Shown here one piece after another: positions 25,705 to 64,000 of a DNA stretch of 64,000 nt. The stretch's first letter is position 1. Each line of letters begins with the position of its first letter. Position numbers and translations under genes: made by a program. Under the pieces are notes generated by a model. The model was given only the letters and a program-made list of their open reading frames with translations, searched no databases and was not told the DNA's origin. Origin of the DNA: Podarcis liolepis (taxonomy: Eukaryota); NCBI GenBank assembly GCA_965112155.1, contig OZ218105.1. One strand, given 5' to 3'.

Positions 25705-25875
25705 TATCGTATTGTTTTATTGCTATGGTCGATGGCTGACGCAAATGAAGATTCATTCATTCATTCATTGTGTGAGTGAACCTCATTCAACACAAGCATA
25801 CCTCACTTAGCACTTTGTTGAATCCCATCCTTAAAAATTAAATATTAGAAAACAAATTCCCAACAGTGTTCTCAC

Positions 25876-28299
25876 CTGAACCCCGTGTTGACTTTCACCT
25901 GCATGACTGGGGACTCCATCAGAATCATTGGAACTCCTTGGATTCAGCTGAGTGTTAGGAGGCTCCACAGAGAAAACAGGAAACAGGGGCCTGAGAAACC
26001 TGAACTCGCTGTTCAGAGACCCACCAGCTAAGCACACCTCATAGTTGTAAGCCTGGGATAGAGATCCAGCACCAGAATCCGCAGAGATCTCCTGGGAATC
26101 AGGTCCCACCGGGAAATTGGCTGCAGAGTTGTAGGTTCCTATGAACTTTTCACGTTTCTGCAACTTGATTACAACAAACGCCACCACAGAAATGAGAAAG
26201 ATGCTTGAGATGGCAGCCAAGCAGATGATCAAATACATCGTCAGGCTGGGGTCTTCCTCCTCCGCTGTTTCCTCCTTTGGGAGAGCCACACTTTTCAGAT
26301 AAGGGTCAGAGAAGCCGTCCACTAGGAGGATTCTGAGCGTGGCAGAGGTGGACTGGGGAGGATGGCCGTTGTCTCGGACCACCACAATCAGATTCTGCTT
26401 GAAGCTGTCTCGGTTGCTGACCGGCCTCAGGGTGGTCACTTCTCCATTCTGGGCCCCCACCGTGAACAGACCCGGCTCTGTGGCCTTCAGCAGCTGGTAG
26501 GAAAGCCAAGAGTTCTGCGCAGAATCCCTGTCCACAGCCACCACCTTGGTGACCAGGTAGCCAGTCTCTGCCCCTCGGGGAACCAGGTCATTCGAGGGGG
26601 AAGTGCCATTCTGGAGAGGGTAGAGGATGAAGGGGGCATTGTCATTTTCATCCACGACCTGAACGCGGATGGGAACTTCTGAGCTCAGTGGAGGGGAACC
26701 TGAATCCACAGCCCTCACCGTCACCTGGAAATCTTGTACTTCCTCATAATCCAGAGACCGGATGGCATACAGGTTCCCCGTTTCAGAGTTGATAGAGATG
26801 TAAGAGGATGTGGGGCCATCATTGACCTTCCCAGGCAAAAGCGAGTAGGTCACTTTGGCATTCTGCGCTGTGTCCAGATCAACAGCATGGACCGAATTGA
26901 TCAGAAGACCAGGAATATTGTTTTCTCTTAACTGCATTTCATAGAATGCCTTTTCAAAGACTGGAGGGTTGTCATTGACATCTGAGATTTGCACATGAAG
27001 TATTCTTGTGGAAGTGAGTCTGGGAGAGCCTCTGTCTGTGGCTGTAATGGTGATGTTATACTCAGAGGCTTTTTCTCTGTCCAGTGGTTGTTGGGTTACC
27101 AGCTGGTAATAGTTGTTCTCTGTGGGTTTGAGTACAAATGGCAGGTTGACTTCAGTGGTGCAGGCAGTTCTGCCACTGTCTCCAGAGTCCACATCTGTGA
27201 CACTAAAGAGGGCCACCACTGTCTCTGGGGGAGAGTCCTCAGGTAAGGGACTGGTGATGGATGTGATGGTAATCTCTGGAGCATTGTCGTTCTCATCCTC
27301 AATCTCTACAATGACTTTACAGTAAGCAGAAAGTCCCCCTCCATCTGTAGCTCTGATATTCATCTCATATTTTGGTCTTTCTTCATAATCAATTATACCT
27401 GAGATAGTAAGTTCCCCTGTCTTTTTATTTAACCTGAACAATCTCAGCACATTTTCTGGCACTTGGCTGAATGAGTAAGTGATGTGAGCATTGGAACCAA
27501 TATCCTTGTCTCTGGCTTCAACTCTTGTGACTAATGTTTCCAATGGGCTGTTTTCCATCAGTTTTTCCTGGTACACAGATTGATTAAATAGAGGAGCATT
27601 ATCATTGGTGTCCAGAACATCTATGATGATTTGTGCGGTTCCAGTTTTGCGGGGTATTCCTCCATCAACAGCTGACAGGATTAGGAAAAGCTTTGCTTCC
27701 ACCTCACGGTCTAGCAGTTTCTCTAACACCAGTTCTGCATATTTGCTACCATCACTGTGACTCTGCACATTCAACCTAAAATATTTATTAGGACTAAGTG
27801 TGTAATTCTGAACAGTATTTTCTCCTTTGTCTGAATCTTGAGCTATCTCCAAAGGGAATACTGTATTTATGTGAGTTTGCTCAGGTATTTCAAAAATAAA
27901 TTGATCTTTCGAGAATTTGGGGGAATTATCATTCACATCCTCTATTTGAACTTCAATTCTATATAGCTTCAATGGATCTTCTAGCACAATTTCAGAGAGC
28001 AGAACACAATGGTCATTCTGACCACAGAGAGCCTCTCGATCTATTCTATCCTTTAATACCATGTTGCCAGAATGAGGATCCAGCTGGAAATACTGCTTGC
28101 TGCTCTTAGAAACCAGCCGGGCTCTCCGAGCAGACAGCTCCTTTGCATCCACTTTCAAATCTTTCAGCACATTAGCCACCAAGGACCCTGTTTTCCTTTC
28201 CTCTGGCACTGAATAGTGGATGGAATTGCATATTGCCCCATACATGCAGAGAGACAGAAAGAAAAAAGTCACTTGCCTGTTCCTGTTATTCATTTCCAT
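25876..28299 (-). CDS. PCDHB: Protocadherin beta-type exon, subfamily A, last beta gene before gamma
   Basis: Likely ATG at 28299 (MEMNNRNRQV; the ORF-track start at 28386 is GTG). Beta signatures ILYPLQNGTSPSNDLVPRGAETGYL and YNYEVCLAGGSLNSEFRFLRP. Donor CAG|GTGAGA at 25876. Read-through stop at 25831. Confidence 0.95.
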
Positions 28300-28500
28300 T
28301 GTTCCAGATTCACTCAAGACAGATTGAACCACAGAAAAATATGTTAGCTGTATCCCTTTGCTGTATTTATTCCTGAAAATGCACACCGCTGTCTCCCTCC
28401 TCCTGATTTTTTTTGCAATGAAGACCCGTATCTCTTTTGCTTCCAGATTGTTTTGCCCTTGTCTATGCTTTCCAAAGATTAATCTTTTAAGAATATGTGC

Positions 28501-28545
28501 TGTGCAATGGCACCATCTTGTGTTTGAAATACATATAACTGCAAT
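28501..28545 (-). promoter_or_regulatory. Beta promoter CSE / CTCF-like motif
   Basis: Minus strand attgcagttatatgtatttcaaACACAAGATGGTGCCAttgcaca, ~210 bp upstream of the ATG. Confidence 0.7.
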
Positions 28546-31500: not shown

Positions 31501-31845
31501 GAATGCTGAAAACATGTTGAGACTGAATTGAGACTTGAACTGGACAAATTCATTTTGTAAAGGGACAAACTGGAACTAGAACTAATCCCTTTTTGGACAG
31601 GATAAAGTAAAACTTTCCAAGCACTGCTAGTAACATGCAGAAGCTTAAATCAATTACAGAAACATAGCATTAATTCATAAATTAATTGGTTAAAAAATAA
31701 GTGCAATCTAGAAACTTCCTTTATATCTTAATACCTAAATATAATGTTTTCCTTTTCATATCAGGTTATTAAATGTGGTCAGCTTCTTCATTAACCAGAT
31801 ATAAATTGGATATGTTCTTTGATATCAAGTAGGCAGTGAGGTTAC

Positions 31846-32200
31846 GGGATGCGGGTGGCGCTGTGGTTCAAACCACAGAGCCTAGGGCTTGCCGATCAGA
31901 AGGTCGGCAGTTCGAATCCCCACCACGGGGTGAGCTCCCATTGCTCGGTCCATGCTCCTGCCAACCTAGCAGTCTGAAAGCACGTCAAAGTTCAAGTGGA
32001 TTAATAGGTACCACTCCGGCGGGAAGGTAAACGGCTTTTCCGTGCACTGCTCTGGTTCACCAGAAGCGGCTTAGTCATGCTGGCCACATGACCTGGAAGC
32101 TGTACGCCAGCTCCCTCGGCCAGTAAAGCGAGATGACCGCCGCAACCCCAGAGTCGGCCACGACCGGACCTAATGGTCAGGTGTCCCTTTACCTCCCTTT
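31846..32200 (+). mobile_element. Sauria SINE, full length
   Basis: Typical body. 15-bp TSD taggcagtgaggtta at 31830-31844 and 32201-32215. Confidence 0.92.
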
Positions 32201-32825: not shown

Positions 32826-35246
32826 CTCTTTCCCTGATTCTTCTTTCCCCGCCTGGTCAGGAATATCTTGGGAAGCAGACGGAGGGGTCTGGTTCACACT
32901 GAGGTTTGGGTCCCCCACAGAAAAAACAGGAATGAGGGGCCTGAGGAACCTGAACTCGCTGCTCAAGGACCCACCGGTTAAGCACACATCGTAGTGGTAA
33001 CTCCTGGAAAGAGACCCGCTCTGAGAATCGCCACCGTTCTCTGGGATGTCGGGTCTGGCAGGTGGGAAGTGAGGAGGGGCAGCGATAAAACTTTCCCTGG
33101 GATCCCTCCTGCAGATCTTGATGGCAGCAAAGGAAACAATGCAAACAAGGAACACAAAGGAGACTGCAGCCAGGCAGATCACCAAGTACAAGGTCAAGGT
33201 CCCATCTTCTTCGTGCTCCTCTTTACTGACCTCCACAGCCTTCATATAAGGATCCGAAAAGCCACCCACGGGAAGGACATGGAGCATGGCAGTGCTGCTC
33301 TGGGGAGGGAGCCCGTTGTCCCTGACCACTATCAGGAGTCTCTGCTTGCTGGTGTCTCGCTCGCTCAGGGCTCTCCTGGTTCTCACTTCCCCATTCTGGG
33401 CTCCTATGCTGAAAAGACCAGGGTCTGTGGCCTTCAGCAGCTCATAGGAAAGCCACGAGTTCTGGCCAGAATCTCCATCCACAGCCACCACCTTGGTGAC
33501 CAGGTAGCCAGCCTCCACCGAATTGGGGACCAGCTCATTGCAGGGGGATGTGCTGTTCTGAAGAGGGTAGAGGAAGAAGGGAGCGTTGTCGTTTTCGTCT
33601 AGGATTATGACTCGGACAGTAACTTCTGAGCTGAGGGGAGGAGACCCTCCATCTGTAGCCCTCACCGTCACTTTGAAATCTTTGATCTGCTCGTAATCCA
33701 GAGATCGGAGGGCATACAGATTTCCGCTTTCAGAGTTGACCGAGATGTAAGAGGCCACAAGGCCATCAGTGACCTTCCCAGGCAAAAGGGAGTAGGTGAC
33801 CTTGGCATTCTTCTCAGTGTCCAGATCAGCAGCATGGACTGAGCCAATGAGCAGTCCTGGAATATTGTTTTCCCGTATCTGCATTTCACATGAAGACTTT
33901 TCAAATACTGGAGGGTTGTCATTGACATCTGAGATCTGAACATTAATCATTCTTGTTGAAGTGAGCCTGGGGGAGCCTTGGTCAACGGCTGTGATGGTGA
34001 TATTATATTCCGGGACCTTCTCTCTGTCCAGGTAGCTTTGGACCACAAGCTGGTAATAGTTATTCATAGTGGGTTTTAAAACAAAGGGAAGGTTTACCTC
34101 CACAGAACACACAGTTCTGCCGTTTTCTCCGGAGTCTCGGTCTGCGACACTGAAGAGAGCCACAAGTGTCTCCAGGGGAGAATCCTCTGCCAAAGGACTA
34201 GTGATGGATATGATGGACACTTCAGGGACATTGTCATTCACGTCTTCAATCTCTACCAGAACCTTGCAGTGACCTGAAAGATCCCCTCCATCTGTTGCTC
34301 TGATGCTCATGCTGTAACTGGTTTCTTTTTCATAATCAATTTGTCCCAAAACAGTTATTTCCCCAGTGAGATCATTTAAGTGGAAGCAACGGTGTATTTT
34401 TTCAGGTACCCGATCAAATGAATAGGTGATCTGTGCATTTGAACCAAAATCTGAATCTCTGGCTTCTACTTTGGAGACCAGGGTGTCCCTAGGGCTGTTT
34501 TCCTTTAACCTTACTTTATATTCAGAATGAGTAAACTGAGGAAAATTATCATTGATGTCCAAAACCTTGATATTTATCTGAACTGTGCCTGTTCTCTGTG
34601 GCTCCCCTCCATCCACAGCTGTGAGAGTCAGTCCAAACTCTGCTGCTTCTTCCCTATCTAGAGGTTTCACCAAAATAAGGTCCAAATATTTGTTTCCACT
34701 TTCATCACTTTTTACTTGGAGCCAGAAATGCTCATTGGAACTGAGAGTGTAGTTTTGGACGTTATTTTTATCCAAATCTGTATCTTGTGCAGATTCCAAA
34801 GGGAATTGGGTGTTGATAGGGACATTCTCTGGAATATATAGCTTGAATTCCTTTTTTGAGAATTTGGGAGTATTGTCATTTACATCTTTTATCTCTATCT
34901 CTATACTGTAGATTTTTAAGGGGTTTTGGAGCACAATTTCAGAGAGCAGCAAGCAAGGATCAGTCTCACCACACAAAGCTTCCCTGTCTACTTTATCATT
35001 TATCAGCAGATTCCCAGAGTGGGTATCAAGGTGGAAATATTGCTGTGTGCTTTCGGACACTAGCTGGGCTCTGCGAGCAGACAGCTCCCCTTTTCCCAGT
35101 TTCAAATCCTTCAGCACATTAGCCACCAGAAATCCACTTTTCTTTTCTTCAGGCACAGAATAGCGTATTGAGATACATATCACTCTAGACACAAAGAGGA
35201 AGAGGAAGAGATACAGACCTTGCCTGTTCCTGATGCAGTCTTCCAT
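32826..35246 (-). CDS. PCDHB: Protocadherin beta-type exon, subfamily B
   Basis: ATG at 35246 (ACCATGG; MEDCIRNRQG). Signatures FFLYPLQNSTSPCNELVP and YHYDVCLTGGSLSSEFRFLRP. Donor GAG|GTGAGC at 32826. Read-through stop at 32814. Confidence 0.95.
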
Positions 35247-35524: not shown

Positions 35525-35823
35525 TCTAAGAAAAATGTGTTACTAGCCTATAAAGTCCATTTAACAGCAGGCCAGTGAAAATTGAGTTTAGATTCATGCT
35601 CATTTAACTGTTAGCTCATGTGTACATGCGATCATAATTTTCTTAATCATGCCAATAAATAGGAAAAGAATAATTTGATAAGTACATTACATTTCAAACC
35701 TTACTTACATTTCCGCGTATCCTGTTCTTTCAGTGAGCATAAGTCATCAACCAAGTATCATTGATTGAATATAATTATTTTTATTCATTCAGAATATAAT
35801 CATATTATACTAATTATCCTCAC

Positions 35824-38247
35824 CTGACATCTCAGACGCGTTTCTTCTTCATTACAAGGCACTTCTTGGGACCCACTGGAACTCCTTGGATTCACCTGAG
35901 TGTTAGGAGGCTCCACAGAGAAAACAGGAAACAGGGGCCTGAGAAACCGGAACTCGCTGTTCAGAGACCCACCAGCTAAGCACACCTCATAGTTGTAAGC
36001 CTGGGATAGAGATCCAGCGCCAGAATCCGCAGAGTTCTCCTGGGAATCAGGTCCCACCGGGAAATTGGCTCCAGAGTTGTAGGTTCCTATGAACTTTTCA
36101 CGTTTCTGCAACTTGATTACAACAAAGGCCACTACAGAAATGAGAAAGATGCTTGAGATGGCAGCCAAGCAGATGATCAAATACATCGTCAGGCTGGGGT
36201 CTTCCTCCTCCACTGTTTCCTCCTTTGGGAGAGCCACACTTTTCAGATAAGGGTCAGAGAAGCCGTCCACTAGGAGGATTCTGAGCGTGGCAGAGGTGGA
36301 CTGGGGAGGATGGCCGTTGTCTCGGACCACCACAATCAGATTCTGCTTGAAGCTGTCTCGGTTGCTGACCGGCCTCAGGGTGGTCACTTCTCCATTCTGG
36401 GCCCCCACCGTGAACAGACCCGGCTCTGTGGCCTTCAGCAGCTGGTAGGAAAGCCAAGAGTTCTGCGCAGAATCCCTGTCCACAGCCACCACCTTGGTGA
36501 CCAGGTAGCCAGTCTCTGCCCCTCGGGGAACCAGGTCATTCGAGGGGGAAGTGCCATTCTGGAGAGGGTAGAGGATGAAGGGGGCATTGTCATTTTCATC
36601 CACGACCTGAACGCGGATGGGAACTTCGGAGCTCAGTGGAGGGGAACCTGAATCCACAGCCCTCACCGTCACCTGGAAATCTTTCACTTCCTCATAATCC
36701 AGAGACCGGATGGCATACAGGTTCCCCGTTTCAGAGTTGATGGAGATGTAAGAGGATGTGGGGCCATCATTGACCTTCCCAGGCAAAAGCGAGTAGGTCA
36801 CTTTGGCATTCTGTGCTGTGTCCGGATCAACAGCATGGACGTAACCAATCAGAAGACCAGGAATATTGTTTTCTCTTAACTGCATTTCATAGAATGGCTT
36901 TTCAAAGACTGGAGGGTTGTCATTGACATCTGAGATTTGAACATGAAGTATTCTTGTGGAAGTGAGTCTGGGAGAGCCCCTGTCAGTGGCTGTGATGGTG
37001 ATGTTATACTCAGAGGCTTGTTCTCTGTCCAGTGGTTGTTGGGTCACCAGCTGGTAATAGTTGTTCTCCGTGGGTTTGAGCACAAATGGCAGGTTGACTT
37101 CAGTGGTGCAGGCAGTTCTGCCACTGTCCCCAGAGTCCACATCTGTGACACTGAAGAGGGCCACCACTGTGTCTGGGGGAGAGTCCTCAGGTAAGGGACT
37201 GGTGATGGATGTGATGGTAATCTCTGGAGCATTGTCGTTCTCATCCTCAATCTCCACAATGACTTTACAGTAAGCAGAAAGTCCCCCTCCATCTGTAGCT
37301 CTGATGTTCATCTCATAATTTGTGTTTTCTTCATAATCAATTGTTGCTGCAGTAGTAAGTTCCCCAGAGTGTTTGTTTAACTTGAACATTCTCAACACAT
37401 TTTCTGAGACTTGCCTGAATGAATAAGTGATATGTGCAAAGGAACCAAGATCCCTGTCAGTGGCTTCAACTTTGGTGACCAGTGTACCTGGTGGAATGTT
37501 TTCCAGTAGTTGCACATTATATACAGATTTATTAAAGTGAGGGGCATTGTCATTGGTGTCCAGAACTTGAACAATAATTTGTGTACTTCCGCTTCTTCTT
37601 GGGATCCCTCCATCAACAGCTGATAGCATTAATGTAATCTGTGGCTTCTCCTCACGGTCCAAAGGCTTTTCTAATACCAGTTCTGCATATTTGCCACCAT
37701 CAGTGTGACTTTCCACCTCCAGTCTAAAATGTTCATTTGGACTAAGAGTATAGTTCTGAATAGTATTTTCACCTTTGTCTGAATCTTCAGCTTTTTCCAA
37801 AAGGAATCGGGTATTCGTGGGTGTCTGCTCAGGTATTTCCAAGACAAATTGTTTTTCAGAGAATATGGGGGAATTATCATTCACGTCCTCTATTTCAATC
37901 TCAATTCTGTGCAGCTGCCATGGCTTTTCCAGCACCATTTCACAAAGCAGAACACAAGGGTCATTCTGACCACACAGGGACTCTCGGTCTATTTTATCTT
38001 TTATTATCACATCCCCAGATTGGGAATCCAGCTCAAAATACTGCTTGGCAGTCTTAGAAAGCAGCTGCGCTCTCCGAGCAGACAGCTCCTTTACTTCCAT
38101 TTTCAAATCTTTCAGCAGATTAGCCACCAGAGACCCACTTTTCTTTTCCTCAGGCACTGAATAGCGGAAGGACTCACACACCACACCACAGGTACACAGA
38201 CAGATAAAGAAGAGACAAACTTGCCTGCTATAATGGAGGATTTTCAT
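35824..38247 (-). CDS. PCDHB: Protocadherin beta-type exon, subfamily A
   Basis: ATG at 38247 (MKILHYSRQV; the upstream ORF extension starts at GTG). Donor CAG|GTGAGG at 35824. Read-through stop at 35800. Confidence 0.95.
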
Positions 38248-39524: not shown

Positions 39525-39526
<2 letters not shown>

Positions 39527-43340: not shown

Positions 43341-45761
43341 CTGTTCCACTGGCTTCCTGCTCTCCAAAGCATTGGGAATATCTTGGGAAGCAGACGGAGG
43401 GGTCTGATTCACATTGAGGTTTGGGTCCCCCACAGAAAAAACAGGAATGAGGGGCCTGAGGAACCTGAACTCGCTGCTCAAGGACCCACCGGTTAAGCAA
43501 ACATCGTAGTGGTAACTCCTGGAAAGAGACCCGCTCTGAGAATCGCCACCGTTCTCTGGGATGTCGGGTCTGGCAGGTGGGAAGTGAGGAGGGGCAGCGA
43601 TAAAACTTTCCCTGGGATCCCTCCTGCAGATCTTGATGGCAGCAAAGGAAACAATGCAAACGAGGAACACAAAGGAGACTGCAGCCAGGCAGATCACCAA
43701 GTACAAGGTCAAGGTCCCATCTTCTTCGTGCTCCTCTTTCCTGACCTCCACAGCCTTCATATAAGGATCCGAAAAGCCACCCACGGGAAGGACATGGAGC
43801 ATGGCAGTGCTGCTCTGGGGAGGGAGCCCGTTGTCCCTGACCACTATCAGGAGTCTCTGCTTGCTGGTGTCTCGCTCGCTCAGGGCTCTCCTGGTTCTCA
43901 CTTCCCCATTCTGGGCTCCTATGCTGAAAAGACCAGGGTCTGTGGCCTTCAGCAGCTCATAGGAAAGCCACGAGTTCTGGCCAGAATCTCCATCCACAGC
44001 CACCACCTTGGTGACCAGGTAGCCGGCCTCCACCGACTTGGGCACCAGCTCATTGCAGGGGGATGTGCTGTTCTGAAGAGGGTAGAGGAAGAAGGGAGCG
44101 TTGTCGTTTTCGTCTATGATTACGACTCGGACAGTAACTTCTGAGCTGAGGGGAGGAGACCCTCCATCTGTAGCCCTCACCGTCACTTTGAAATCTTTGA
44201 TCTGCTCATAATCCAGAGATCGGAGGGCATACAGATTTCCGCTTTCAGAGTTGACTGAGATGTAAGAGGCCACAAGGCCATCAGTGACCTTCCCAGGCAA
44301 AAGGGAGTAGGTGACCTTGGCATTCTTCTCAGTGTCCAGATCAGCAGCATGGACTGAGCCAATGAGCAGTCCTGGAATATTGTTTTCCCGTATATGCATT
44401 TCAAATGAAGACTTTTCAAATACTGGAGGGTTGTCATTGATATCTGAAATCTGAACATTAATAACTCTTGTTGAAGTGAGCCTGGGGGAGCCTTGGTCTA
44501 CGGCTGTGATGGTGACATTATACTCTGAGACCTTCTCTCTGTCCAAGGGACTTTGGACCACAAGCTGGTAATAGTTATTCATAGTGGATTTTAACATAAA
44601 AGGAAGGTTTGCCTCCACAGAGCACATGGTTCTGCCATTGTCTCCGGAGTCTCGGTCTGTGACAGTGAAGAGAGCCACAAGTGTCTCCAGGGGAGAATCC
44701 TCTGCCAGAGGACTAGTGATGGATATGATGGACACTTCAGGGACATTGTCATTCACATCCTCAATCTCTACCAGGACCTTGCAGTGACCTGAAAGACCCC
44801 CTCCATCTGTTGCTCTAATGTTCATGTCATACCTGGTTTCTTTTTCATAATCAAGCTGACCAGAAAGAGTGATTTCCCCCGTGATTTCATTTAAATAAAA
44901 GAAACTGTATATTTTTTCTGGTGCCTGGTGGAATGAGTACGTGATCTGTGCATTCGAACCAAAATCCAAATCTGTAGCTTCCACTTTGAAGACCAGAGTG
45001 CCCTGTGGGCTGTTTTCTTTTAACCTAGCTTTGTATTCAGGCTGGGTAAACAGAGGAAAGTTGTCATTATTGTCAAGAACATCAATATTTATTTTAACTG
45101 TGCCTGTTCTCTGTGGGACCCCTCCATCTGCAGCCATGAGGGTCAATCCAAAGTGTGAGTCCTTCTCCCTGTCCAATGGCTTCTCCAGAACAAGATGCAC
45201 ATATTTTCTTCCATCCTTGTTGCTTTCCACATATAGTCGGAAATGCTCATTGGGACTGAGTGTGTAGTTTTGGATACCGTTTTCTCCTAAGTCCTCATCT
45301 TGGGCAGATTCCAAGAGAAACTGTGTGTTTGTAGGAACCATCTCTGGAATTTCCAGATCAAATTTATCTTTAGAGAATTTGGGAGTATTGTCATTCACAT
45401 CTTCTATCTTCATTTCTATACTGTAGATATTTAAGGGGTTTTGAAGCACAATTTCAGAGAGCAGCATGCAAGGATCAGTCTGGCCACATAAAGCTTCTCT
45501 GTCTATTTTATCATTTATCAGCAAATTCCCAGAGTGAGTATCAAGGTGGAAATATTGCTTTGTGCTTTTGGACACTAGCTGGGCTCTGCGAGCAGAGAGC
45601 TCCCCTTTTCCCAGTTTCAAATCCTCCAGCACATTAGCCACCAAAAACCCCTTTTTCTTTTCTTCAGGTACAGAATAGCGAAATGAAATGCAGACTGTTT
45701 TCAACACAAAGAGAAAAAGCAAAAGATACAGACCTTTCATCTTTCTGAAGCTATCGTTCAT
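43341..45761 (-). CDS. PCDHB: Protocadherin beta-type exon, subfamily B
   Basis: ATG at 45761 (MNDSFRKMKG). Beta signatures. Donor CAG|GTGAGA at 43341. Read-through stop at 43332. Confidence 0.95.
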
Positions 45762-46319: not shown

Positions 46320-48743
46320 CTGAACCCCATGTTGACTTTCACCTGCATGACTGGGGACACCTTCAGAATCATTGGAACTCCTTGGATTCAGCTGAGTGTT
46401 AGGAGGCTCCACAGAGAAAACAGGAAACAGGGGCCTGAGAAACCTGAACTCGCTGTTCAGAGACCCACCAGCTAAGCACACCTCATAGTTGTAAGCCTGG
46501 GATAGAGATCCAGCACCAGAATCCGCAGAGTTCTCCTGGGAATCAGGTCCCACCGGGAAATTGGCTGCAGAGTTGTAGGTTCCTATGAACTTTTCACGTT
46601 TCTGCAACTTGATTACAACAAACGCCACCACAGAAATGAGAAAGATGCTTGAGATGGCAGCCAAGCAGATGATCAAATACATCGTCAGGCTGGGGTCTTC
46701 CTCCTCCGCTGTTTCCTCCTTTGGGAGAGCCACACTTTTCAGATAAGGGTCAGAGAAGCCGTCCACTAGGAGGATTCTGAGTGTGGCAGAGGTGGACTGG
46801 GGAGGATGGCCGTTGTCTCGGACCACCACAATCAGATTCTGCTTGAAGCTGTCTCGGTTGCTGACCGGCCTCAGGGTGGTCACTTCTCCATTCTGGGCCC
46901 CCACCGTGAACAGACCCGGCTCTGTGGCCTTCAGCAGCTGGTAGGAAAGCCAAGAGTTCTGCGCAGAATCCCTGTCCACAGCCACCACCTTGGTGACCAG
47001 GTAGCCAGTCTCTGCCCCTCGGGGAACCAGGTCATTCGAGGGGGAAGTGCCATTCTGGAGAGGGTAGAGGATGAAGGGGGCATTGTCATTTTCATCCACG
47101 ACCTGAACGCGGATGGGAACTTCTGAGCTCAGTGGAGGGGAACCTGAATCCACAGCCCTCACCGTCACCTGGAAATCTTGTACTTCCTCATAATCCAGAG
47201 ACCGGATGGCATACAGGTTCCCCGTTTCAGAGTTGATGGAGATGTAAGAGGATGTGGGGCCATCATTGACCTTCCCAGGCAAAAGCGAGTAGGTCACTTT
47301 GGCATTCTGCGCTGTGTCCAGATCAACAGCATGGACCGAACTGATCAGAAGACCAGGAATATTGTTTTCTCTTAACTGCATTTCATAGACTGGCTTTTCA
47401 AACACTGGAGGGTTGTCATTGACATCTGAGATTTGCACATGAAGTATTCTTGTGGAAGTGAGTCTGGGAGAGCCTTTGTCAGTGGCTGTGATGGTGATGT
47501 TATATTCACTGACTTTTTCTCTGTCCAGTGGTTGTTGGGTCACCAGCTGGTAATAGTTGTTCTCCGTGGGTTTGAGCACAAATGGCAGGTTGACTTCAGT
47601 GGTGCAGGCAGTTCTGCCACTGTCCCCAGAGTCCACATCTGTGACACTGAAAAGGGCCACCACTGTCTCTGGGGGAGAGTCCTCAGGTAAGGGACTGGTG
47701 ATGGAAGTGATTGATATCTCTGGGGCATTGTCGTTCTCATCTTCAATGTCTACAATTACTTTGCAGTAAGCTGAAAGCCCCCCTCCATCTGTGGCTTTGA
47801 TGTGCATCTCATAGCTGGTGATTTCTTCATAGTCAGTCATCCCTACAATAGTAAGTTCCCCAGTGTGTTTGTTTAACTTGAATGATCTCAACACATCTTC
47901 TGGAACTTCACTGAAGGAATAAGTGATGTGAGCATTGGTACCAGAATCCCTGTCAGTGGCTTCCACTTTTGCGACCAATGTATCCAATGGGCTGTTTTCC
48001 ATTAGTTTCACTTTGTACTCAGATTGTGGAAACTGAGGTACATTATCATTAGCATCCAGAATATCGATGAGAAGCTGTGCTGTTCCAGTTCTTTTTGGGA
48101 TCCCCCCATCGATAGCTGACAGAGTAAGATAAATGTGTGGATTCACTTCACGGTCTAGCGGTTTCTCTAACACCAGTTCTGCGTATTTGCTACCATCACT
48201 GTGACTTTTCACATCCAGCCTAAAATGTTCATTAGGACTAAGGGTGTAGTTCTGAACAGCATTTTTTCCTTTGTCTGAGTCTTGAGCTTTCTCCAAAGGA
48301 AATCTGATATCCACAGGAGTCTGCTCAGGTATTTCAAGAAGGAATTGATTTTTAGAGAATTTGGGGGAATTATCATTCACGTCCTCTATCTGAACTTCAA
48401 TTCTGTGTAGCTGCAATGGCTTTTCCAGCACAATTTCAGACAGTAGAACACAAGGTTCATTCTGACCACACAGGGACTCCCGATCTATTTTATCCTTTAC
48501 TGTCACATCCCCAGAATGAGGATCCAGCTGGAAATACTGCTTGGAGCTCTTAGAAACCAGTCGGACTCTCCGAGCAGACAGCTCCTTTGCATCCACTCTC
48601 AAATCTTTTAGCACATTCGCTACCAGAGACCCACTTTTCTTTTCCTCTGGCACTGAATAGCGGAAGGACTCACACATGGCTATGCATGCACAGAGACACA
48701 GGGAAAAAGACCAAACTTGCCTGATCTTGAGATGCAATTCCAT
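46320..48743 (-). CDS. PCDHB: Protocadherin beta-type exon, subfamily A
   Basis: ATG at 48743 (MELHLKIRQV; an in-frame upstream ATG exists at 48776). Donor CAG|GTGAGA at 46320. Read-through stop at 46248. Confidence 0.95.
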
Positions 48744-48981
48744 TCTCCCAGCCTCTCCTCCTGAAATGCAAGGCATTGTCCTCTTCTCTATTCCAAGGCG
48801 TGTCTCTTCTTAACTGTATTTATCTTCTGAAAGTGACACTGTGTCCTGCTTATTCCCACTGAAATTTCTGAAGACTGGCTTGCAATAGGGATCTGCTGTT
48901 TTTCCTGTGCTGATTCCTTTGTCTAATGGCTACAGCTCTTGAGGAGAGCAACTGCTGCTCCCCAATTTCCTTCTTTTATCT

Positions 48982-51702: not shown

Positions 51703-54123
51703 CTTTTTCTCTGATTCTGTTTTCCCCGCTTGGTCAGGAATATCTTGGGAAGCAGATGGAGGGGTCTGGTTCACATTGAGGTTTGGGTCCCCCACAGAAA
51801 ATACAGGAATGAGGGGCCTGAGGAATCTGAACTCGCTGCTCAAGGACCCACCGGTTAAGCAAACGTCATAGTGGTAACTCCTGGAAAGAGACCCGCTCTG
51901 AGAATCGCCACCGTTCTCTGGGATGTCGGGTCTGGCAGGTGGGAAGTGAGGAGGGGCAGCGATAAAACTTTCCCTGGGATCCCTCCTGCAGATCTTGATG
52001 GCAGCAAAGGAAACAATGCAAACGAGGAACACAAAGGAGACTGCAGCCAGGCAGATCACCAAGTACAAGGTCAAGGTCCCATCTTCTTCGTGCTCCTCTT
52101 TACTGACCTCCACAGCCTTCATATAAGGATCCGAAAAGCCACCCACGGGAAGGACATGGAGCATGGCAGTGCTGCTCTGGGGAGGGAGCCCGTTGTCCCT
52201 GACCACTATCAGGAGTCTCTGCTTGCTGGTGTCTCGCTCGCTCAGGGCTCTCCTGGTTCTCACTTCCCCATTCTGGGCTCCTATGCTGAAAAGACCAGGG
52301 TCTGTGGCCTTCAGCAGCTCATAGGAAAGCCACGAGTTCTGGCCAGAATCTCCATCCACAGCCACCACCTTGGTGACCAGGTAGCCGGCCTCCACCGACT
52401 TGGGCACCAGCTCATTACAGGGGGATGTGCTGTTCTGAAGAGGGTAGAGGAAGAAGGGAGCGTTGTCGTTTTCGTCTATGATTACGACTCGGACAGTAAC
52501 TTCTGAGCTGAGGGGAGGAGACCCTCCATCTGTAGCCCTCACCGTCACTTTGAAATCTTTGATCTGCTCATAATCCAGAGATCGGAGGGCATACAGATTT
52601 CCGCTTTCAGAGTTGACCGAGATGTAAGAGGCCACAAGGCCATCAGTGACCTTCCCAGGCAAAAGGGAGTAGGTGACCTTGGCATTCTTCTCAGTGTCCA
52701 GATCAGCAGCATGGACTGAGCCAATGAGCAGTCCTGGAATATTGTTTTCCCGTATCTGCATTTCAAATGAAGACTTTTCAAATACTGGAGGGTTGTCATT
52801 GACATCTGAGATCTCAATGTTAATCACTCTTGTTGAACTGAGCCTGGGGGAGCCCTGGTCAACGGCTGTGATGGTGATATTATACTCTGAGACCTTCTCT
52901 CTGTCCAAGGGACTTTGGACCACAAGCTGGTAATAGTTATTCATAGTGGATTTTAACATAAAAGGAAGATTTACCTCCACAGAACACATGGTTCTGCCAT
53001 TGTCTCCGGAGTCTCGATCTGTGACAGTGAAGAGAGCCACAAGTGTCTCCAGGGGAGAATCCTCTGCCAAAGGACTAGTGATGGATATGATGGACACCTC
53101 AGGGACATTGTCATTCACGTCTTCAACATCTACCAGGACCTTGCAGTGACCTGAAAGACCCCCTCCATCTGTTGCTCTGATACTCATGTCATAGCTGGCT
53201 TCTTTTTCATAATCAAGCTGACCAGAAAGGGTGATTTCCCCCGTGATTTCATTGAGGTGAAATAGATCATATATTTCTTCAGGCACTCTGTAGAATGAAT
53301 AGGCAATCTGTGCATTTGAACCAAAATCCAAATCTATAGCTTCCATTTTGAAGACCAGAGTTCCCTGTGGGCTGTTTTCCTTTAGCCTTACTTTATATTC
53401 AGAATGAGTAAACTCTGGGGAATTATCATTATTGTCAAGAACATCAATATTTATTTGAACTGTGCCTGTTCTCTGTGGCTCCCCTCCATCCACAGCTGTG
53501 AGAGTCAGTCCAAAGTATGAGTCCTTCTCCCTGTCCAGTGGCTTCTGCAGAACAAGATCCACATATTTCCTTCCATTTTTGTTGCTCTCCATGCTAAGCA
53601 TGAAATGTTCATTGGGACTGAGAGTGTAGTTTTGGATGTTATTTATCCCCAGGTCCTCATCTCGGGCAGATTCCAAGGGGAAATGTGTATTTGGAGAGAC
53701 ATTTTCAGGAATTTCCAAATCAAATGCCTTTTTAGAGAATTTGGGGACATTATCATTCACATCTTCTATCTTGATTTCAATACTGAAGATCTTTAAGGGG
53801 TCTTGCAACACAATTTCAGTGTTTAATAAGCAAGGATCAGTCTGGCCACATAATGTTTCTCGGTCTATTTTATCATTTATCAACAAATTCCCAGTTTTGC
53901 TATCAAAACGAAAATATTGCTTACTGTTCTTGGAAACCAGCTGGGCTCTGCGAGCAGAGAGCTCCCCTGTTCCCAGTTTCAAATCCTCCAGCACATTAGC
54001 CACTAAAGACCCCCTTTTCTTTTCTTCAGGCACAGAATAATGAAGTGAAATACTCAGTGATCCAGGAAGACAAAGAAAAAGCAAAAAATACAGACCTTGT
54101 TCCTTTCTGTAGCCGTCTCCCAT
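51703..54123 (-). CDS. PCDHB: Protocadherin beta-type exon, subfamily B
   Basis: 818-aa ORF from the ATG at 54123. Donor AAG|GTGAGG at 51703. Read-through stop at 51667. Confidence 0.95.
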
Positions 54124-56607: not shown

Positions 56608-59031
56608 CTGGATAATGTTTTGACTTTCACCTGCATGACTGGGGACTCCTTCAGAATCATTGGAACTCCTTGGATTCAACTGAGTGTTAGGAGGCTCCAC
56701 AGAGAAAACAGGAAACAGGGGCCTGAGAAACCTGAACTCGCTGTTCAGAGACCCACCAGCTAAGCACACCTCATAGTTGTAAGCCTGGGATAGAGATCCA
56801 GCACCAGAATCCGCAGAGTTCTCCTGGGAATCAGGTCCCACCGGGAAATTGGCTCCAGAGTTGTAGGTTCCTATGAACTTTTCACGTTTCTGCAACTTGA
56901 TTACAACAAACGCCACTACAGAAATGAGAAAGATGCTTGAGATGGCAGCCAAGCAGATGATCAAATACATCGTCAGGCTGGGGTCTTCCTCCTCCGCTGT
57001 TTCCTCCTTTGGGAGAGCCACACTTTTCAGATAAGGGTCAGAGAAGCCGTCCACTAGGAGGATTCTGAGCGTGGCAGAGGTGGACTGGGGAGGATGGCCG
57101 TTGTCTCGGACCACCACAATCAGATTCTGCTTGAAGCTGTCTCGGTTGCTGACCGGCCTCAGGGTGGTCACTTCTCCATTCTGGGCCCCCACCGTGAACA
57201 GACCCGGCTCTGTGGCCTTCAGCAGCTGGTAGGAAAGCCAAGAGTTCTGCGCAGAATCCCTGTCCACAGCCACCACCTTGGTGACCAGGTAGCCAGTCTC
57301 TGCCCCTCGGGGAACCAGGTCATTCAAGGGGGAAGTGCCATTCTGGAGAGGGTAGAGGATGAAGGGGGCATTGTCATTTTCATCCATGACCTGAACGCGG
57401 ATGGGAACTTCGGAGCTCAGTGGAGGGGAACCTGAATCCACAGCCCTCACCGTCACCTGGAAATCTTGTACTTCCTCATAATCCAGAGACCGGATGGCAT
57501 ACAGGTTCCCCGTTTCAGAGTTGATGGAGATGTAAGAGGATGTGGGGCCATCGTTGACCTTCCCAGGCAAAAGCGAGTAGGTCACTTTGGCATTCTGCGC
57601 TGTGTCCAGATCAACAGCATGGACCGAATTGATCAGAAGACCAGGAATATTGTTTTCTCTTAACTGCATTTCATAGAATGGCTTTTCAAACACTGGAGGG
57701 TTGTCATTGACATCTGAGATTTGCACATGAAGTATTCTTCTGGAAGTGAGTCTGGGAGAGCCCCTGTCTGTGGCTGTGATGGTGATGTTATATTCGCTGA
57801 CTTTTTCTCTGTCCAGTGGTTGTTGGGTCACCAGCTGGTAATAATTGTTCTCCGTGGGTTTGAGCACAAATGGCAGGTTGACTTCAGTGGTGCAGGCAGT
57901 TCTGCCACTGTCCTCAGAGTCCACGTCTGTGACACTGAAGAGGGCCACCACTGTGTCTGGGGGAGAGTCCTCAGGTAAGGGACTGGTGATGGAAGTGATT
58001 GATATCTCTGGGGCATTGTCGTTCTCATCTTCAATGTCTACAATTACTTTGCAGTAAGCTGAAAGCCCTCCTCCATCTGTGGCTTTGATGTGCATCTCAT
58101 AACTGGTGATTTCTTCATAGTCAGTCATCCCTACAATAGTAAGTTCCCCAGTGTGTTTGTTTAACTTGAATGATCTCAACACATCTTCTGGAACTTCACT
58201 GAAGGAATAAGTGATGTGAGCATTGGTACCAGAATCCCTGTCAGTGGCTTCCACTTTTGCGACCAATGTATCCAATGGGCTGTTTTCCATTAGTTTCACT
58301 TTGTACTCAGATTGTGGAAAATGAGGTACATTATCATTAGCATCCAGAATATCGATGAGAAGCTGTGCTGTTCCAGTTCTTTTTGGGATCCCCCCATCGA
58401 TAGCTGACAGAGTAAGATAAATCTGTGGATTCACCTCACGGTCTAGCGGTTTCTCTAACACCAATTCTGCATATTTGCTACCATCACTGTGACTTTTCAC
58501 ATCCAGCCTAAAATGTTCATTAGGACTAAGGGTGTAGTTCTGAACAGCATTTTTTCCTTTGTCTGAGTCTTGAGCTTTCTCCAAAGGAAATCTGATATCC
58601 ACAGGAGTCTGCTCAGGTATTTCAAGAAGGAATTGATTTTTAGAGAATTTGGGGGAATTATCATTCACGTCCTCTATCTGAACTTCAATTCTGTGTAGCT
58701 GCAATGGCTTTTCCAGCACAATTTCAGACAGTAGAACACAAGGTTCATTCTGACCACACAGGGACTCCCGATCTATTTTATCCTTTACTGTCAGATCCCC
58801 AGAATGAGGATCCAGCTGGAAATACTGCTTGGAGCTCTTAGAAACCAGCCGGGCTCTCCGAGCAGACAGCTCCTTTGAATCCACTCTCAAATCTTTTAGC
58901 ACATTCGCTACCAGAGACCCACTTTTCTCCTCCTCTGCCACTGAATAGCGGAAAGACTCACACACTGCTATTCATGCACAGAGACACAGGGAAAAAGACC
59001 AAACTTGCCTGATCTTGAGATGCAATTCCAT
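56608..59031 (-). pseudogene. PCDHB: Protocadherin beta subfamily A copy with a nonsense codon in the signal peptide (pseudogene or null allele)
   Basis: The ATG at 59031 gives MELHLKIRQVWSFSLCLCA*. TGA at 58974-58972 corresponds to TGC (Cys) in the 46-48 kb paralog. The rest of the frame is open. Donor CAG|GTGAGT at 56608. Confidence 0.85.
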
Positions 59032-59269
59032 TCTCCCAGCCTCTCCTCCTGAAATGCAAGGCATTGTCCTCTTGTCTGTTCCAAGGCGTGTCTCTTCTTA
59101 ACTGTATTTTTCTTCTGAAAGTGACACTGTGTCCTGCTTATTCCTACTGGAATTTCTGAAGACTGGCTTGCAATAGGGATCTGCTGTTTTTCCTGTGCTG
59201 ATTCCTTTGTCTAATGGCTACAGCTCTTGAGGAGAGCAACTGCTGCTCTTCAATTTCCTTCTTTTATCT

Positions 59270-59296
59270 TGTGCAATACCACCACCTTGTGTTTGA
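59270..59296 (-). promoter_or_regulatory. Beta promoter CSE / CTCF-like motif
   Basis: Identical to 48982-49008. Confidence 0.72.
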
Positions 59297-60097
59297 ACTA
59301 TGTTATGGCGTTATGAAAACCAAAAGTTTTTCCAGAATAAGAGCTGGTAAACATGAGCATCCATGTGGCAAGGCAAACGGCTGTCACCCCAATGGAGCAT
59401 AAACCCCATATTCCCAGCTTTCTTTTTTTTAAGAGTTTTTTTAGAACCTGAGATATGAAATAAAGCTTTTTTTTTCTTTTGATGATGATGATTTGGTGAG
59501 AAATTATAGTATTACCACCATACAGTGTTTTAGTTTCATGAATTGCTAGAGACACAATATGGGCTGTATGATTTGTTTCCATCTAAGGCATTCACAGTAT
59601 ACATTCACTGAAATCTATGGGCATGATTTTATTTTTTTTTAACATGCATTGATCTCTTTCAATTCCACTTAGTTGAATGCAATCCTTGGAACATTGTTCC
59701 TGCTCCCAAAATTATTATGTCATGTTTTATATTTCTTAGGCTGCTGAAACCTCCCAATGTTTGTTCCCCAAATCCCCCCCCCCATTACAGCCTAACCTAC
59801 AGTACCCACAGGGCTGCTGGGAGGGTAAAATGGGGAACAGGAGAATTATGTAGACCACTTTGTACAACTTTTACATTATTAATGTAAAACTAAATAAATA
59901 AAAACAGCCTATCTTCCAAAAAGGGAAGGAGAAGCTTTGAATGAAGGAGAGTTCCCAGCCATGATGACTGATTCATGAATATACACATTTCGATATGAAG
60001 TTTGTAAATGGTCTATACCTCTGCGATTCTTCAAAGGGCAGTTCATGTCATGTCCTTCAGGCAACTGCACCTCTTTCTCTAAAGCATACGCCACACA

Positions 60098-60413
60098 CAG
60101 GACTGGATTTAGGTTTGTTTAGGCCCTAAGCTACTGAAGGTAACGGGCCCTTTATATGTCCAGCTGTCTTTTGTCAACAATAAACTGTAGCTGGTTTTTG
60201 TGTTGAATATATGCTATATGGTAATTCCTGGACCTAATAGGTATCGGAGGAGCGTACACAACACAAAACACTGTTGCTACATGTAGGTGTTTTTTTTATC
60301 TTATATTTTGGAAATGTACATCCAGGGGTTTTTTTCTTTATTTTTTGGGGGGCCCCCAAGAGAGTGGGGCCCTAAGCTATAGCTTGTTTATCTTATATGT
60401 TCATCCAGCACTG
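60098..60413. mobile_element. hAT-type MITE
   Basis: Imperfect TIRs caggactggat / atccagcactg. Perfect 8-bp TSD gccacaca at 60090-60097 and 60414-60421. Confidence 0.8.
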
Positions 60414-62514
60414 GCCACACACACATGCCCTTCCAGACATGCTAGCATTCTGTATTACCAGTATTAAGGTTTCCCTGGCCATTCAGTCCTTTCAGTTCCT
60501 CACAGAGGATGAATATGTGTGGTTCAATATAAAGTTCACATTCATCTGTAAACATGGGCATGTGAGGAAGAGTCCCTGTTACTTACTACTCATTTAACTG
60601 GGTTCCTTCTTCCTAATGTGATATATACAAGTAGGAGCCCAGTACAAAATGTTGCACAGATTAGTAAAACAGTTCAGTGCCCCACACAAACCCTCTATTC
60701 TTTCTCTCTCTTGCTTCCCTTCCCCATGGGACATTCCTTCTCTAGTCCCCTCTTTCCCAGCTGAACGTTCTCTATAGCTGGGGCCCAGAGAGGAACCTCT
60801 GTGTCCGATCTTATCCCCAGTCAGTTGGGTCTCCCACCTTGTGACACCTGGCATATCTGCACACACAGAGTTCAGTCAACACAGGACACTCCGATCAGCC
60901 ATGGGTAGAAATACAGTAGGACACTTGCCATAATGCATATACTTAATACAGATGTTTATATTGATAGTTATACTTTATGTATAAATCTCATAACCTAAGA
61001 TAATACAGATCTTGTAGAACACAATGAGAGACAAGTTTCTAAATACTTCGTGACCCATTATGTGGTGTGGAAGTTGTTTATAGGACATGATATTTGTTCC
61101 AATGAAATATCATTTAAAGAATCATGTAGGAATAGAACAAACTTCAGTTCCATACTGAACATCTCAACATGCACCCGTGGAATTGATTTATGCTGTATGA
61201 CAGCTGATTACCCTCAATGGCATTTTTGCAGGTTTCTGAATACAATGGGAGACAATACTACTTAAGTCTCAGGTGGTTGCTGTGACCAGCAGAATCTTTT
61301 TCTATCTCTTTTAGGCACCAGGTATTTCTGGGGTGTTTTACAACACAATCCTAACCAAGTCTAATCAGAGGAAAGTACTATTCAATTCAATGGTGCTTAT
61401 TCCTAGGTAAGTGGGGTTAGGATTGCAGCCCTAGTCATCATCATATGCTGTGGTCCAAGGATGTTGCCTAGACACCAACCCTCTTCCCCACTTCTGGGTT
61501 CTCAAGCACATGCTTCTTGGCTCAGGGGATAGGACCAAGTTGCTTCTTTAATTTGTGCTGAGGGTGGAGGGAACACAAGAGTCTCTTCCAAGCAATGGTA
61601 AAGACTTCTGATGTGCTTGATCTGACATCAGTCTGGTGGGAACTCAGGTTACAGGGTCTGTGCACGGCTGAGTGTTCTGTTCAGTAGATCTTACAGCACA
61701 ATCTTAACCATGTCTAATCATGTCCTGCACTTGCAGGAAGGCACTATACAAAACATATGTTGCCAAGTTTCAAAGTAAAAGCCATAGAACTTAATGTCTC
61801 CACTCCTCATTTCTCATTATAATGGTGGGATGTGATTCAGCCAAATCAGCCTTGACTAGGTTCCTATAGCTAAGAGCATATAGGACTTTTTCATCTCCTT
61901 CCCCCATCGCTTTATTGTTCCTCACTCAGCCACAATCTCTCAGTGTCTTCAACTGAAACTCACTTGCAAACTGCACAAAAGTCTCTCAATTTGACCATCT
62001 TTTTCAGGGTGAGGACATCCTCTTGGCTAACATTGGCCAAGAAACCCATATTAACTAAGAACTATGAATATGTTTCACTACCATTAAAGCACATACTAGA
62101 TTTTCCCATTTACCTATGTCAGCAAACCATTGGGCAAAAGATACAATCCAAAAGAGAAATCTTTCCAGAAAAAGCCCCCCATTGATGTAGATTTAAGAGA
62201 ATGCACAGCACCTGCCAATTTGCCACCAAAGTCCCTCATTACACAACCAGCTCATTCTATCCTAGGTTTGGTATGGACCATCATCAAAGGTACTTCTTTA
62301 CAATGCCAGGTTTCAATTCAGTCTGTTGCACCATTTTGCAACTATAAACTGCAGAACCTGATTCTTACATCAAAGGGCATGTTGTTCAGTGGTAAAAAAA
62401 CTGCTCTGCATACAAAGCATGCCTGGTTCAAACCCTGGCATCCTCGGGTAGGTCTGAAAAGATACCTGGACCAATGGTTTGACTCATTAAAATACAGACT
62501 TCTATATTCCTGCT

Positions 62515-62587
62515 TTTCCTGCTTGGCAGGGGGTTGTACTCTATGGCCCTTGTGGTCTCTTCCAACTCTATGATTCTATGATTCTAT
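62515..62587 (+). mobile_element. CR1 3' terminal fragment
   Basis: ttcctgcttggcagggggttg...ccaactctatgattctatgattctat. Confidence 0.85.
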
Positions 62588-63358
62588 TGCTTATGTTACC
62601 CTCTCCCACATTGTTTATTATAATGGCAGATTACAAGTCAGCCTACTTGCCCTTAACATATTAACAGTTCAAATTATAAAACAGAAAACTATGAGGGCCC
62701 AGATTTGTTTGCTCAAAATGTCGATGGTTTAAAAGGCCCGGATACATAAAAAGGTCATCTAACCCTGAAAAGGGTACTCAGAGTTCCTCCCCTGGAAGGC
62801 AATTCCACAGGTGGGGTGCCACCAGCAAGAAGACCCTCTAAGTAATGCCATGTATATAACTGGGAAGCCTGCTCTAATCCGGGCTCCTGTGTGCAGGTAC
62901 TTCAGCAGCTGCAGCTACAGGTATGTCGTCCACACCTTGGAGGTATGTATATTCTGGGACACATTGGTGTATCTGCAGTGGCTATGATGTTCTGAGCGAG
63001 TTTTAATATGCAGAAAGTCCAAAGGCAGAGGACCTAAATAGCAGGAGGGCTGAAGGAAAGAATCTGAACTCAACAATGGGCTGGGAAGAGGTGGCCTGCC
63101 TGAGAAATGGAAGGGTGGAAGAAGAGAGGAGGAGAGAGGAAACATCAAATGCAGACGATGGACCAGCGATGAAGACAGAGGGAAATGAGGAAAAAAGTTT
63201 CACATGAACTTGAAATAAACAGATCATTTTAAAATTGAAGCATGCTCCAAAATAACAAAATATATCGTCAATAAATTTCAAAAGAAATACACGAACATCT
63301 TATATGCCTAATTATCAATGTCAAAGTGACTAACTGGTGTACTTGGAAATTATTTCAC

Positions 63359-64000
63359 CTTTTCCTCTGATTCTTCTTTCCCCGCCTGTTCAGGAATATC
63401 TTGGGAAGCAGAAGGAGGGGTCTGGTTCACATTGAGGTTTGGGTCTCCCACAGAAAAAACAGGAATGAGGGGCCTGAGGAATCTGAACTCGCTGCTCAAG
63501 GACCCACCGGTTAAGCAAACGTCGTAGTGGTAACTCCTGGAAAGAGACCCGCTCTGAGAATCGCCACCGTTCTCTGGGATGTCGGGTCTGGCAGGTGGGA
63601 AGTGAGGAGGGGCAGCGATAAAACTTTCCCTGGGATCCCTCCTGCAGATCTTGATGGCAGCAAAGGAAACAATGCAAACGAGGAACACAAAGGAGACTGC
63701 AGCCAGGCAGATCACCAAGTACAAGGTCAAGGTCCCATCTTCTTCTTGCTCCTCTTTACTGACCTCCACAGCCTTCATATATGGATCCGAAAAGCCACCC
63801 ACGGGCACGACATGGAGCATTGCAGTGCTGCTCTGGGGAGGGAGCCCGTTGTCCCTGACCACTATCAGGAGTCTCTGCTTGCTGGTGTCTCGCTCGCTCA
63901 GGGCTCTCCTGGTTCTCACTTCCCCATTCTGGGCTCCTATGCTGAAAAGACCAGGGTCTGTGGCCTTCAGCAGCTCATAGGAAAGCCACGAGTTCTGGCC
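63359..64000 (-). CDS. PCDHB: Protocadherin beta-type exon, subfamily B, 3' part (EC6, TM, cytoplasmic); 5' part beyond the right edge
   Basis: Near-identical to the other B copies. Donor AAG|GTGAAA at 63359. Read-through stop at 63350. Confidence 0.92.

Follow-up and report, generated by a model that had tools for sequence, protein, structure and literature searches.

A putative beta-specific terminal exon related to EC5 in the clustered protocadherins of the lizard Podarcis liolepis

Clustered protocadherins provide neurons with surface identity; the constant domains of the alpha and gamma classes carry known signalling and trafficking functions, and the beta class is regarded as tail-less. 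We have analysed a 64,000-nucleotide (nt) stretch of DNA from the lizard Podarcis liolepis (GenBank assembly GCA_965112155.1, contig OZ218105.1), the whole of which is referred to here as the window and which contains eight exons of the protocadherin beta (Pcdh-beta) type. An original prediction, made from the letters of this DNA, had proposed that the eight exons look like spliced variable exons and that they are joined to the constant exons of the downstream gamma cluster. On the evidence of the window and of reptile gene models it is likely that the beta exons splice to a shared, beta-specific terminal exon of 39 codons that derives from an EC5 segment, and not to the gamma constant region.

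Among the closest described systems, Pcdh-alpha and Pcdh-gamma have variable exons that splicing joins to a common set of constant exons (Wu and Maniatis 1999, summarised in PMC2764143 and PMC4978886). Mammalian Pcdh-beta genes are described as single-exon genes without a constant region (Vanhalst 2001; Hirano 2012, PMC3431597), in agreement with the background given in the original prediction, and mouse beta mRNAs are reported to be unspliced and locally polyadenylated (PMC3431597). In Anolis carolinensis, constant exons are reported for delta, alpha and gamma, with beta stated to have none (Jiang et al. 2009, PMC2764143); the search was made with mammalian constant exons and the reverse-transcription PCR splicing tests covered delta, alpha and gamma only. 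The constant exons of Xenopus tropicalis pcdh-gamma1 are of gamma type, ∼74% identical to those of gamma2, and the same paper and reviews treat beta genes as single-exon (Etlioglu et al. 2016, PMC4978886). As far as the literature was searchable, nothing was found on a squamate, reptile or turtle beta constant exon; the terminal exon described below thus seems, as far as searched, to be present in automated annotation and undescribed in papers.

Splice donors of the beta exons and a shared C-terminal tail

The motif EFRFLRP occurs eight times in the minus-strand reading frames of the window and in all eight cases the sequence from the 38th codon onward starts with GT. The last exon bases lie at 63359, 56608, 51703, 46320, 43341, 35824, 32826 and 25876, each in phase 0, so that every coordinate and donor string agrees with the predicted set of eight phase-0 donors placed exactly 37 codons past EFRFLRP. 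The exons fall into two subfamilies, A and B, as follows (a slash marks the exon boundary).

63359..64000, minus strand: beta exon b1, 3' part, subfamily B; leaves the window end; donor AAG/GTGAAA with last base 63359, the weakest of the eight at 7.3 bits
56608..59064, minus strand: beta exon b2, subfamily A; donor CAG/GTGAGT at 56608; TGA stop within the signal peptide, immediately upstream of 58965
51703..54123, minus strand: beta exon b3, subfamily B; ATG at 54123; donor AAG/GTGAGG at 51703
46320..48776, minus strand: beta exon b4, subfamily A; ATG at 48776 or 48743; donor CAG/GTGAGA; Podarcis muralis orthologue 96% identical, with the shared tail
43341..45761, minus strand: beta exon b5, subfamily B; donor CAG/GTGAGA at 43341
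35824..38247, minus strand: beta exon b6, subfamily A; donor CAG/GTGAGG; P. muralis orthologue (P0018) 96% identical, with the shared tail
32826..35246, minus strand: beta exon b7, subfamily B; donor GAG/GTGAGC at 32826
25876..28299, minus strand: beta exon b8, subfamily A, last of the cluster; donor CAG/GTGAGA; P. muralis orthologue (P0011) 96% identical, with the shared tail

Scored with a simple vertebrate donor matrix, on which 9 bits or more is attained by under 1% of the 3322 minus-strand GTs, seven of the eight donors lie at 9.8–12.2 bits, the remaining one being that at 63359. In the 15 nt flanking the donors on each side, AG/GTGA alone is invariant among the eight, and position +5 is G in seven of eight. 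A 5' splice site of one and the same phase is therefore carried by every beta variable exon (8/8), as it is in clusters of the alpha/gamma type, and the proposal that the gamma exons use this phase as well is borne out by phase-0 donors at 13240 and 7858. The reading frames that continue past the beta donors end in mutually unrelated tails of 2–25 codons, the range that had been given, and the minus-strand AATAAA sequences noted near 35780 and 46075 are located at 35785 and 46080.

Likeness of the donors within one genome is open to more than one interpretation. Within a subfamily, the 3' 1.5 kb of the exons, from approximately EC4 to the cytoplasmic end, are 92–100% identical and the 5' parts 76–85% identical, and identity collapses to ∼27%, the random level, directly past the donor. 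Such a sharp end at the donor, together with 3' homogeneity, is the pattern expected of gene conversion, and conversion reaching the exon end could explain much of the donor likeness inside this genome. The original prediction had argued that gene conversion alone is insufficient; this holds in so far as the exons ending at 35824 and 43341 keep the donor while their last seven codons are unlike those of their subfamily mates, and is weakened in so far as conversion could keep donors alike within a genome. The stronger argument for the donors consequently comes from other species. At the donor position reptile beta models are either spliced or read through into a V (GTN) codon, and B-type exons have kept AG/GTGA at this codon in Phrynosoma as well as in lacertids and geckos.

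A protein search with one beta exon retrieved RefSeq and UniProt models from many squamates, a large share of them labelled 'isoform X1...X16' and ∼845 residues long; in these the variable exon stops precisely at the donor and continues into one and the same 39-residue tail, which begins with ARASLSED and closes with GQNDWL-x-YQ. The predicted spliced product was searched one exon at a time. The tail is present in the squamates Podarcis muralis, P. raffonei, Lacerta, Zootoca, Rhineura, Elgaria, Euleptes, Heteronotia, Paroedura, Sphaerodactylus, Eublepharis, Pogona, Sceloporus, Anolis sagrei, Hemicordylus, Salvator and Vipera (17 listed), and the P. muralis orthologues of the subfamily A exons, ∼96% identical to them, bear it. 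A further search seeded with a turtle beta protein found it in 11 turtle genera including a pleurodire (Chrysemys, Trachemys, Malaclemys, Gopherus, Chelonoidis, Mauremys, Pangshura, Caretta, Dermochelys, Pelodiscus and Emydura), where it starts GRASVSED and ends GQNGWLSYQ, with the same stop and attached at the corresponding donor. Within a species a single tail sequence is common to several isoforms, and the junction is shared by RefSeq, by Ensembl-derived UniProt entries (Salvator, Chrysemys) and by submitter annotation (Pangshura, Caretta). The view that the beta exons are spliced variable exons is therefore upheld by reptile gene models, which join them to a shared tail.

In the window the tail peptide is encoded once, at 23372-23256, where local tblastn found it 90–95% identical to the C-termini of lacertid beta-16-like proteins. 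The site reads ttttttatgtcctttgcag/GCC, 39 codons and TAG, giving the peptide ARASLSED...GQNDWLTYQ, and lies 2.5 kb past the last beta donor, with another 7.5 kb separating it from the first gamma-type exon downstream; it falls outside the coordinates of the original prediction, upstream of the gamma variable exons. By a crude acceptor score the acceptor is the best AG of the 10-kb spacer between the beta and gamma exons and ranks in the top 0.2% of 4665 minus-strand AGs. From the eight donors to 23372 the predicted introns would measure 2503–39986 nt. The elements concerned are the following.

23253..23372, minus strand: putative beta terminal ('constant') exon, coding part; 39 codons and TAG; acceptor ttttttatgtcctttgcag/G, first base 23372
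23238..23393, minus strand: fossil protocadherin EC5 segment; ancestral frame kept; the sole protocadherin-like stretch of the 10-kb spacer
22191..22196, minus strand: candidate poly(A) signal AATAAA, a tentative assignment; the first canonical one past the terminal-exon stop, 1057 nt on

Like an alpha/gamma-type cluster, the beta exons thus have a shared downstream acceptor and a common C-terminus. In the gene models the arrangement departs from the mammalian beta definition of a single exon without a constant exon, having conserved donors and a shared terminal exon. It also lacks the three constant exons of ∼125–150 residues with alpha/gamma homology, having one 39-codon exon with its own stop and homology to EC5.

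That the beta exons would splice onward to the gamma constant exons, in a fused beta-gamma transcription unit, was the most specific part of the original prediction, and it is not what the gene models contain. The idea draws on the phase 0 common to beta and gamma donors, on the adjoining position of the two clusters on the same strand, and on the Xenopus cluster at the beta position (gamma1), which owns gamma-type constant exons. However, the beta tail is present in 63 of the reptile beta models fetched and also in a viper variant, and a gamma constant region occurs in none of the reptile beta-like models fetched, a statement about gene models, absence from which is not absence in RNA. The gamma constant motif was present in two fetched proteins only, both of them fused models from non-reptiles. 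In addition, a strong acceptor and an in-frame stop precede the gamma exons in the window, so that beta-to-gamma splicing would need to skip this exon and to read through the whole gamma array, and a study in mouse detected no joining of beta products to the constant exons of alpha or gamma (PMC3431597). We consider a fused unit most improbable. A minor beta-to-gamma-constant isoform may exist beside the beta-tailed form.

Short forms, which had been suggested to arise by intronic polyadenylation, find a counterpart in read-through isoforms within the same annotations that hold spliced ones. In Lacerta agilis a single exon gives rise to both isoform X3, which reads through, and isoform X4, which is spliced. 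Both forms probably exist.

Participation of both subfamilies is less evenly documented. All tail-bearing models retrieved are of A type, and the B-type models seen are read-through, fused or end in a short GPVC tail. Moreover, the weakest donor (63359) belongs to a B-type exon, and the last codons and read-through tails of B exons differ from those of A. B exons could accordingly be true single-exon genes or have another partner, with the terminal exon used by subfamily A only. Against this, the protein searches were seeded with one A-type exon and one turtle protein, which left B-type RefSeq isoforms unsampled; B exons keep AG/GTGA at the same codon in the lineages named above; and three of the four B donors score 9.8–11 bits. 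Use by subfamily A only is in our estimation unlikely, although far from negligible. The case for splicing of the beta exons to the terminal exon is built on gene models and conservation, and for subfamily B it is donor conservation that suggests it.

Several other endings occur at the same donor in relatives. Some turtle beta models (P0160, P0186, P0194, P0282 and P0140; sea turtles, Emys, Gopherus) continue into a different shared tail that starts LSHKVAILAK, and turtles may own a second, alternative terminal exon. Isoforms of one lacertid beta paralogue (P0260, P0263 and P0264; Podarcis muralis, P. raffonei and Lacerta agilis) end LFV past the donor. For the LFV and GPVC short tails no acceptor with matching codons was found in the window.

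Age, origin and proposed use of the terminal exon

Between lizard and turtle, identity is ∼60% in the tail, ∼64% in the ectodomain, ∼45% in the juxtamembrane region and ∼21% in the last 37 variable codons. The position of the tail stop is fixed and indels are in frame only, amounting to three residues fewer in Rhineura and one more in Eublepharis. The most conserved core is the C-terminal GQN-x-WL-x-YQ. Because a homologous tail is present in both turtles and squamates, the terminal exon would be older than the squamate-turtle split, and the kept frame and stop, with ∼60% identity beside a neighbouring segment at ∼21%, indicate that it is not an unused scrap.

These values bear on a further alternative, in which the donors are unused relics, the tail is an annotation artefact spread by homology, and lizard beta genes are single-exon and locally polyadenylated as in mammals. 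Many beta paralogues are indeed annotated as read-through, AATAAA or ATTAAA lies 40–520 nt from seven of the eight donors, and gene conversion to the exon end could keep the donors passively. A dead scrap is, on the other hand, unlikely to remain ∼60% identical between lizard and turtle with frame, stop and acceptor kept; different annotation sources share the junction, and the read-through tails are unconserved. We regard this alternative as very unlikely.

Certain observations nevertheless weigh against use of the terminal exon by the beta exons at large. No beta constant exon is given in the published work on Anolis (PMC2764143), the retrieved tails are restricted to A-type models, and annotation treats many reptile beta paralogues as single-exon genes that read through. 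Gene models can spread between species by protein homology, and the number of species consequently overstates their independence. No protein derived from a transcriptome contig and containing the junction was found, the cluster members of ten tail-bearing models all being genome annotation, and a search with the last 130 codons of exon b8 returned no transcript-derived fragments. Searching 1.84 billion representatives with the 39-residue query gave one true match, the rest being weak EC5 matches; this match (P0122) is a 74-residue open reading frame (ORF) on a 2258-base Logan contig of agamid-like source, and it spans the terminal exon and enters it from the intron (…LFLYSLQ/ARASIAED…), indicating that it is unspliced. 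Finally, acceptors as strong as that of the terminal exon are latent within the intact exons (below), and upstream transcripts would have to avoid them.

The origin of the terminal exon is suggested by its surroundings. Within the 10-kb spacer, 23393-23238 alone resembles a protocadherin, aligning in frame and without gaps to the start of EC5. The ancestral F-L-Y-P-L-Q has become F-L-C-P-L-Q, which forms the pyrimidine tract and CAG of the acceptor; GQN-x-WLSYQ is kept, the stop stands at the first L of WLSYQ-LLKAT, and similarity runs a few codons past it. In shuffle tests the window tail scores z = 10–14 and a turtle tail against its own variable exon z = 17, with none of 2000 shuffles reaching the observed EC5 score. 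The gapless in-frame alignment and the shuffle scores thus identify the terminal exon, as judged from sequence, as a recycled piece of a decayed variable exon. In the Logan ORF the ancestral FLY-x-LQ is better kept than in the window.

All intact beta exons contain a latent 3' splice site at F-(I/F)-L-Y-P-L-Q/N of EC5. Counting the first base past CAG on the minus strand, these sites lie at 57343, 52435, 47055, 44073, 36559, 33558 and 26611, rank in the top 0.1–0.4% of AGs, are in frame with the phase-0 donors and are homologous to the terminal-exon acceptor. Their presence fits an origin by exonisation.

Combined, these data are best explained by a constant region consisting of a single beta-specific exon at 23372-23253, which is ancient in reptiles, comes from EC5 and is presumably under purifying selection. 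The lacertid beta subcluster would then be built like the alpha and gamma subclusters, with a constant region in miniature. Each beta variable exon would encode a signal peptide, six cadherin repeats, a transmembrane segment and ∼120 cytoplasmic residues, end in a phase-0 5' splice site and presumably possess its own promoter. The pre-mRNA would extend to one shared terminal exon (23372-23253 plus a 3' untranslated region, UTR) lying between the last beta and first gamma exon, and splicing would remove 2.5–40 kb, including any downstream variable exons. Every isoform would in this way gain the same 39-residue C-terminus and presumably also share a 3' UTR and a poly(A) site; short forms with unconserved ends of 2–25 residues would come from transcripts that read through and are polyadenylated locally. 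Exonisation is envisaged as capture of a latent acceptor (the F-L-Y-P-L-Q codons to CAG) in EC5 of a decayed variable exon, a stop having arisen 39 codons past the captured acceptor, in an event predating the divergence of squamates and turtles. We infer the use of the terminal exon in this species, its use by subfamily B exons, the choice of promoter and the poly(A) site. The peptide may act as a short shared cytoplasmic docking or trafficking motif.

Gene content of the window

Large ORFs are confined to the minus strand of the window. Seven complete protocadherin-type ORFs lie within 25831-58965 and an eighth leaves the window end beyond 63359; further protocadherin ORFs occupy 13222-15753 and 7831-10275, and one more runs from ∼1104 off the window start. 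With lengths of 811–887 codons, each in a single exon of ∼2.4 kb, they have the form of clustered-protocadherin variable exons, and in every exon tested Cadherin_2, five Cadherin stretches and Cadherin_C_2 were detected above the curated Pfam cut-offs.

Compared with solved EC1-4 chains, exon b4 (46320-48776) scores highest with beta 6 (430 bits) and beta 8 (426), and lower with gamma A1 (401), gamma B3 (397) and alpha 4 (372); exon 13240-15753 is nearest to gamma A8 and gamma A1. The nearest public proteins to the beta exons are lacertid 'protocadherin beta-16-like' models. No fetched protein was identical to any product of the window, the best being those of P. muralis at ∼96%. Upstream exons nearest to beta and downstream exons nearest to gamma A together indicate that the window covers the beta/gamma boundary, the beta subcluster, as judged by sequence similarity, reaching its 3' end inside it and the gamma subcluster beginning there. 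The gamma-A-type exons lie downstream of the beta exons, and the alpha side is beyond the window. The gamma-type exons are as follows.

13240..15753, minus strand: first gamma-A-type variable exon; phase-0 donor CAG/GTGAGT at 13240; nearest gamma A8 and A1
7858..10275, minus strand: second gamma-A-type variable exon; phase-0 donor CAG/GTATGT at 7858
1..1104, minus strand: third gamma-type variable exon, 5' part; leaves the window start; 52–53% identity to the other two over ∼365 residues

In exon b2 a TGA replaces a Cys codon of its near-twin b4 in the signal peptide (CLCA-stop-IAV versus CLCACIAM, 58966-59064). The exon is otherwise intact, and its donor is the strongest of the eight. A recently disabled copy is the probable explanation, an assembly error the alternative. 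Among k-mers shared by the promoters, only a CACAAGGTGGTG-type word was found, in three A-type exons.

Many submitter proteins of 1200–1700 residues from squamates, birds and mammals (P0001, P0007, P0034, P0107, P0129-P0137 and others) consist of two neighbouring variable exons fused by gene predictors, and are often named Fat 2/3/4-like or cadherin-23-like. These fused proteins are misannotations that contaminate protein databases.

Meaning and comparison with known clusters

We tentatively propose, as a reading with a little under an even chance of being correct, that the beta subcluster of the reptile (possibly amniote) ancestor had its own constant exon, which came from the latent EC5 acceptor of a dying variable exon. 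If so, 'beta without a constant region' would be a derived mammalian state, and a conserved cytoplasmic end of 39 residues, together with a common 3' UTR, would be a feature of every reptile beta isoform. A conserved beta constant exon in reptiles would alter the accepted evolution of the three subclusters, would be a clean case of a new terminal exon arising from inside a dead paralogous exon, and would point to a short cytoplasmic motif conserved like the ectodomain since before the lizard-turtle split. It would also bear on annotation, as current models of many reptile beta genes still show either a single exon that is read through or a fusion of two ectodomains.

Xenopus pcdh-gamma1, a variable array that lies between alpha and the distal gamma cluster and has constant exons of its own, is comparable to the locus. 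The two differ in that the Xenopus variable exons are gamma-like and the reptile beta terminal exon is unrelated to the Xenopus constant exons. With the Anolis carolinensis cluster, of delta-alpha-beta-gamma order, it has in common the tandem beta variable exons, the taxon group and, as far as the window extends, that order; unlike the published description of that cluster, a RefSeq model of Anolis sagrei bears the beta tail.

Mammalian Pcdh-beta is matched in the nearest solved chains (beta 6 and beta 8), in domain order, in the FKFL/FRFL cytoplasmic motif and in the place upstream of the gamma cluster. However, fetched mammalian models stop 18–29 residues past FKFLKP, before the reptile donor position, whereas reptile exons extend for 37 codons (34 in turtles) as far as a conserved donor, and have a shared terminal exon. 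From Pcdh-alpha and Pcdh-gamma the reptile beta arrangement differs in having one 39-codon constant exon instead of three exons of ∼125–150 residues, and in a peptide homologous to EC5 and not to the constant domains, its use being documented at the level of gene models. It resembles them in its tandem variable exons of ∼2.4 kb, their phase-0 donors, the one shared 3' acceptor and the common C-terminus.

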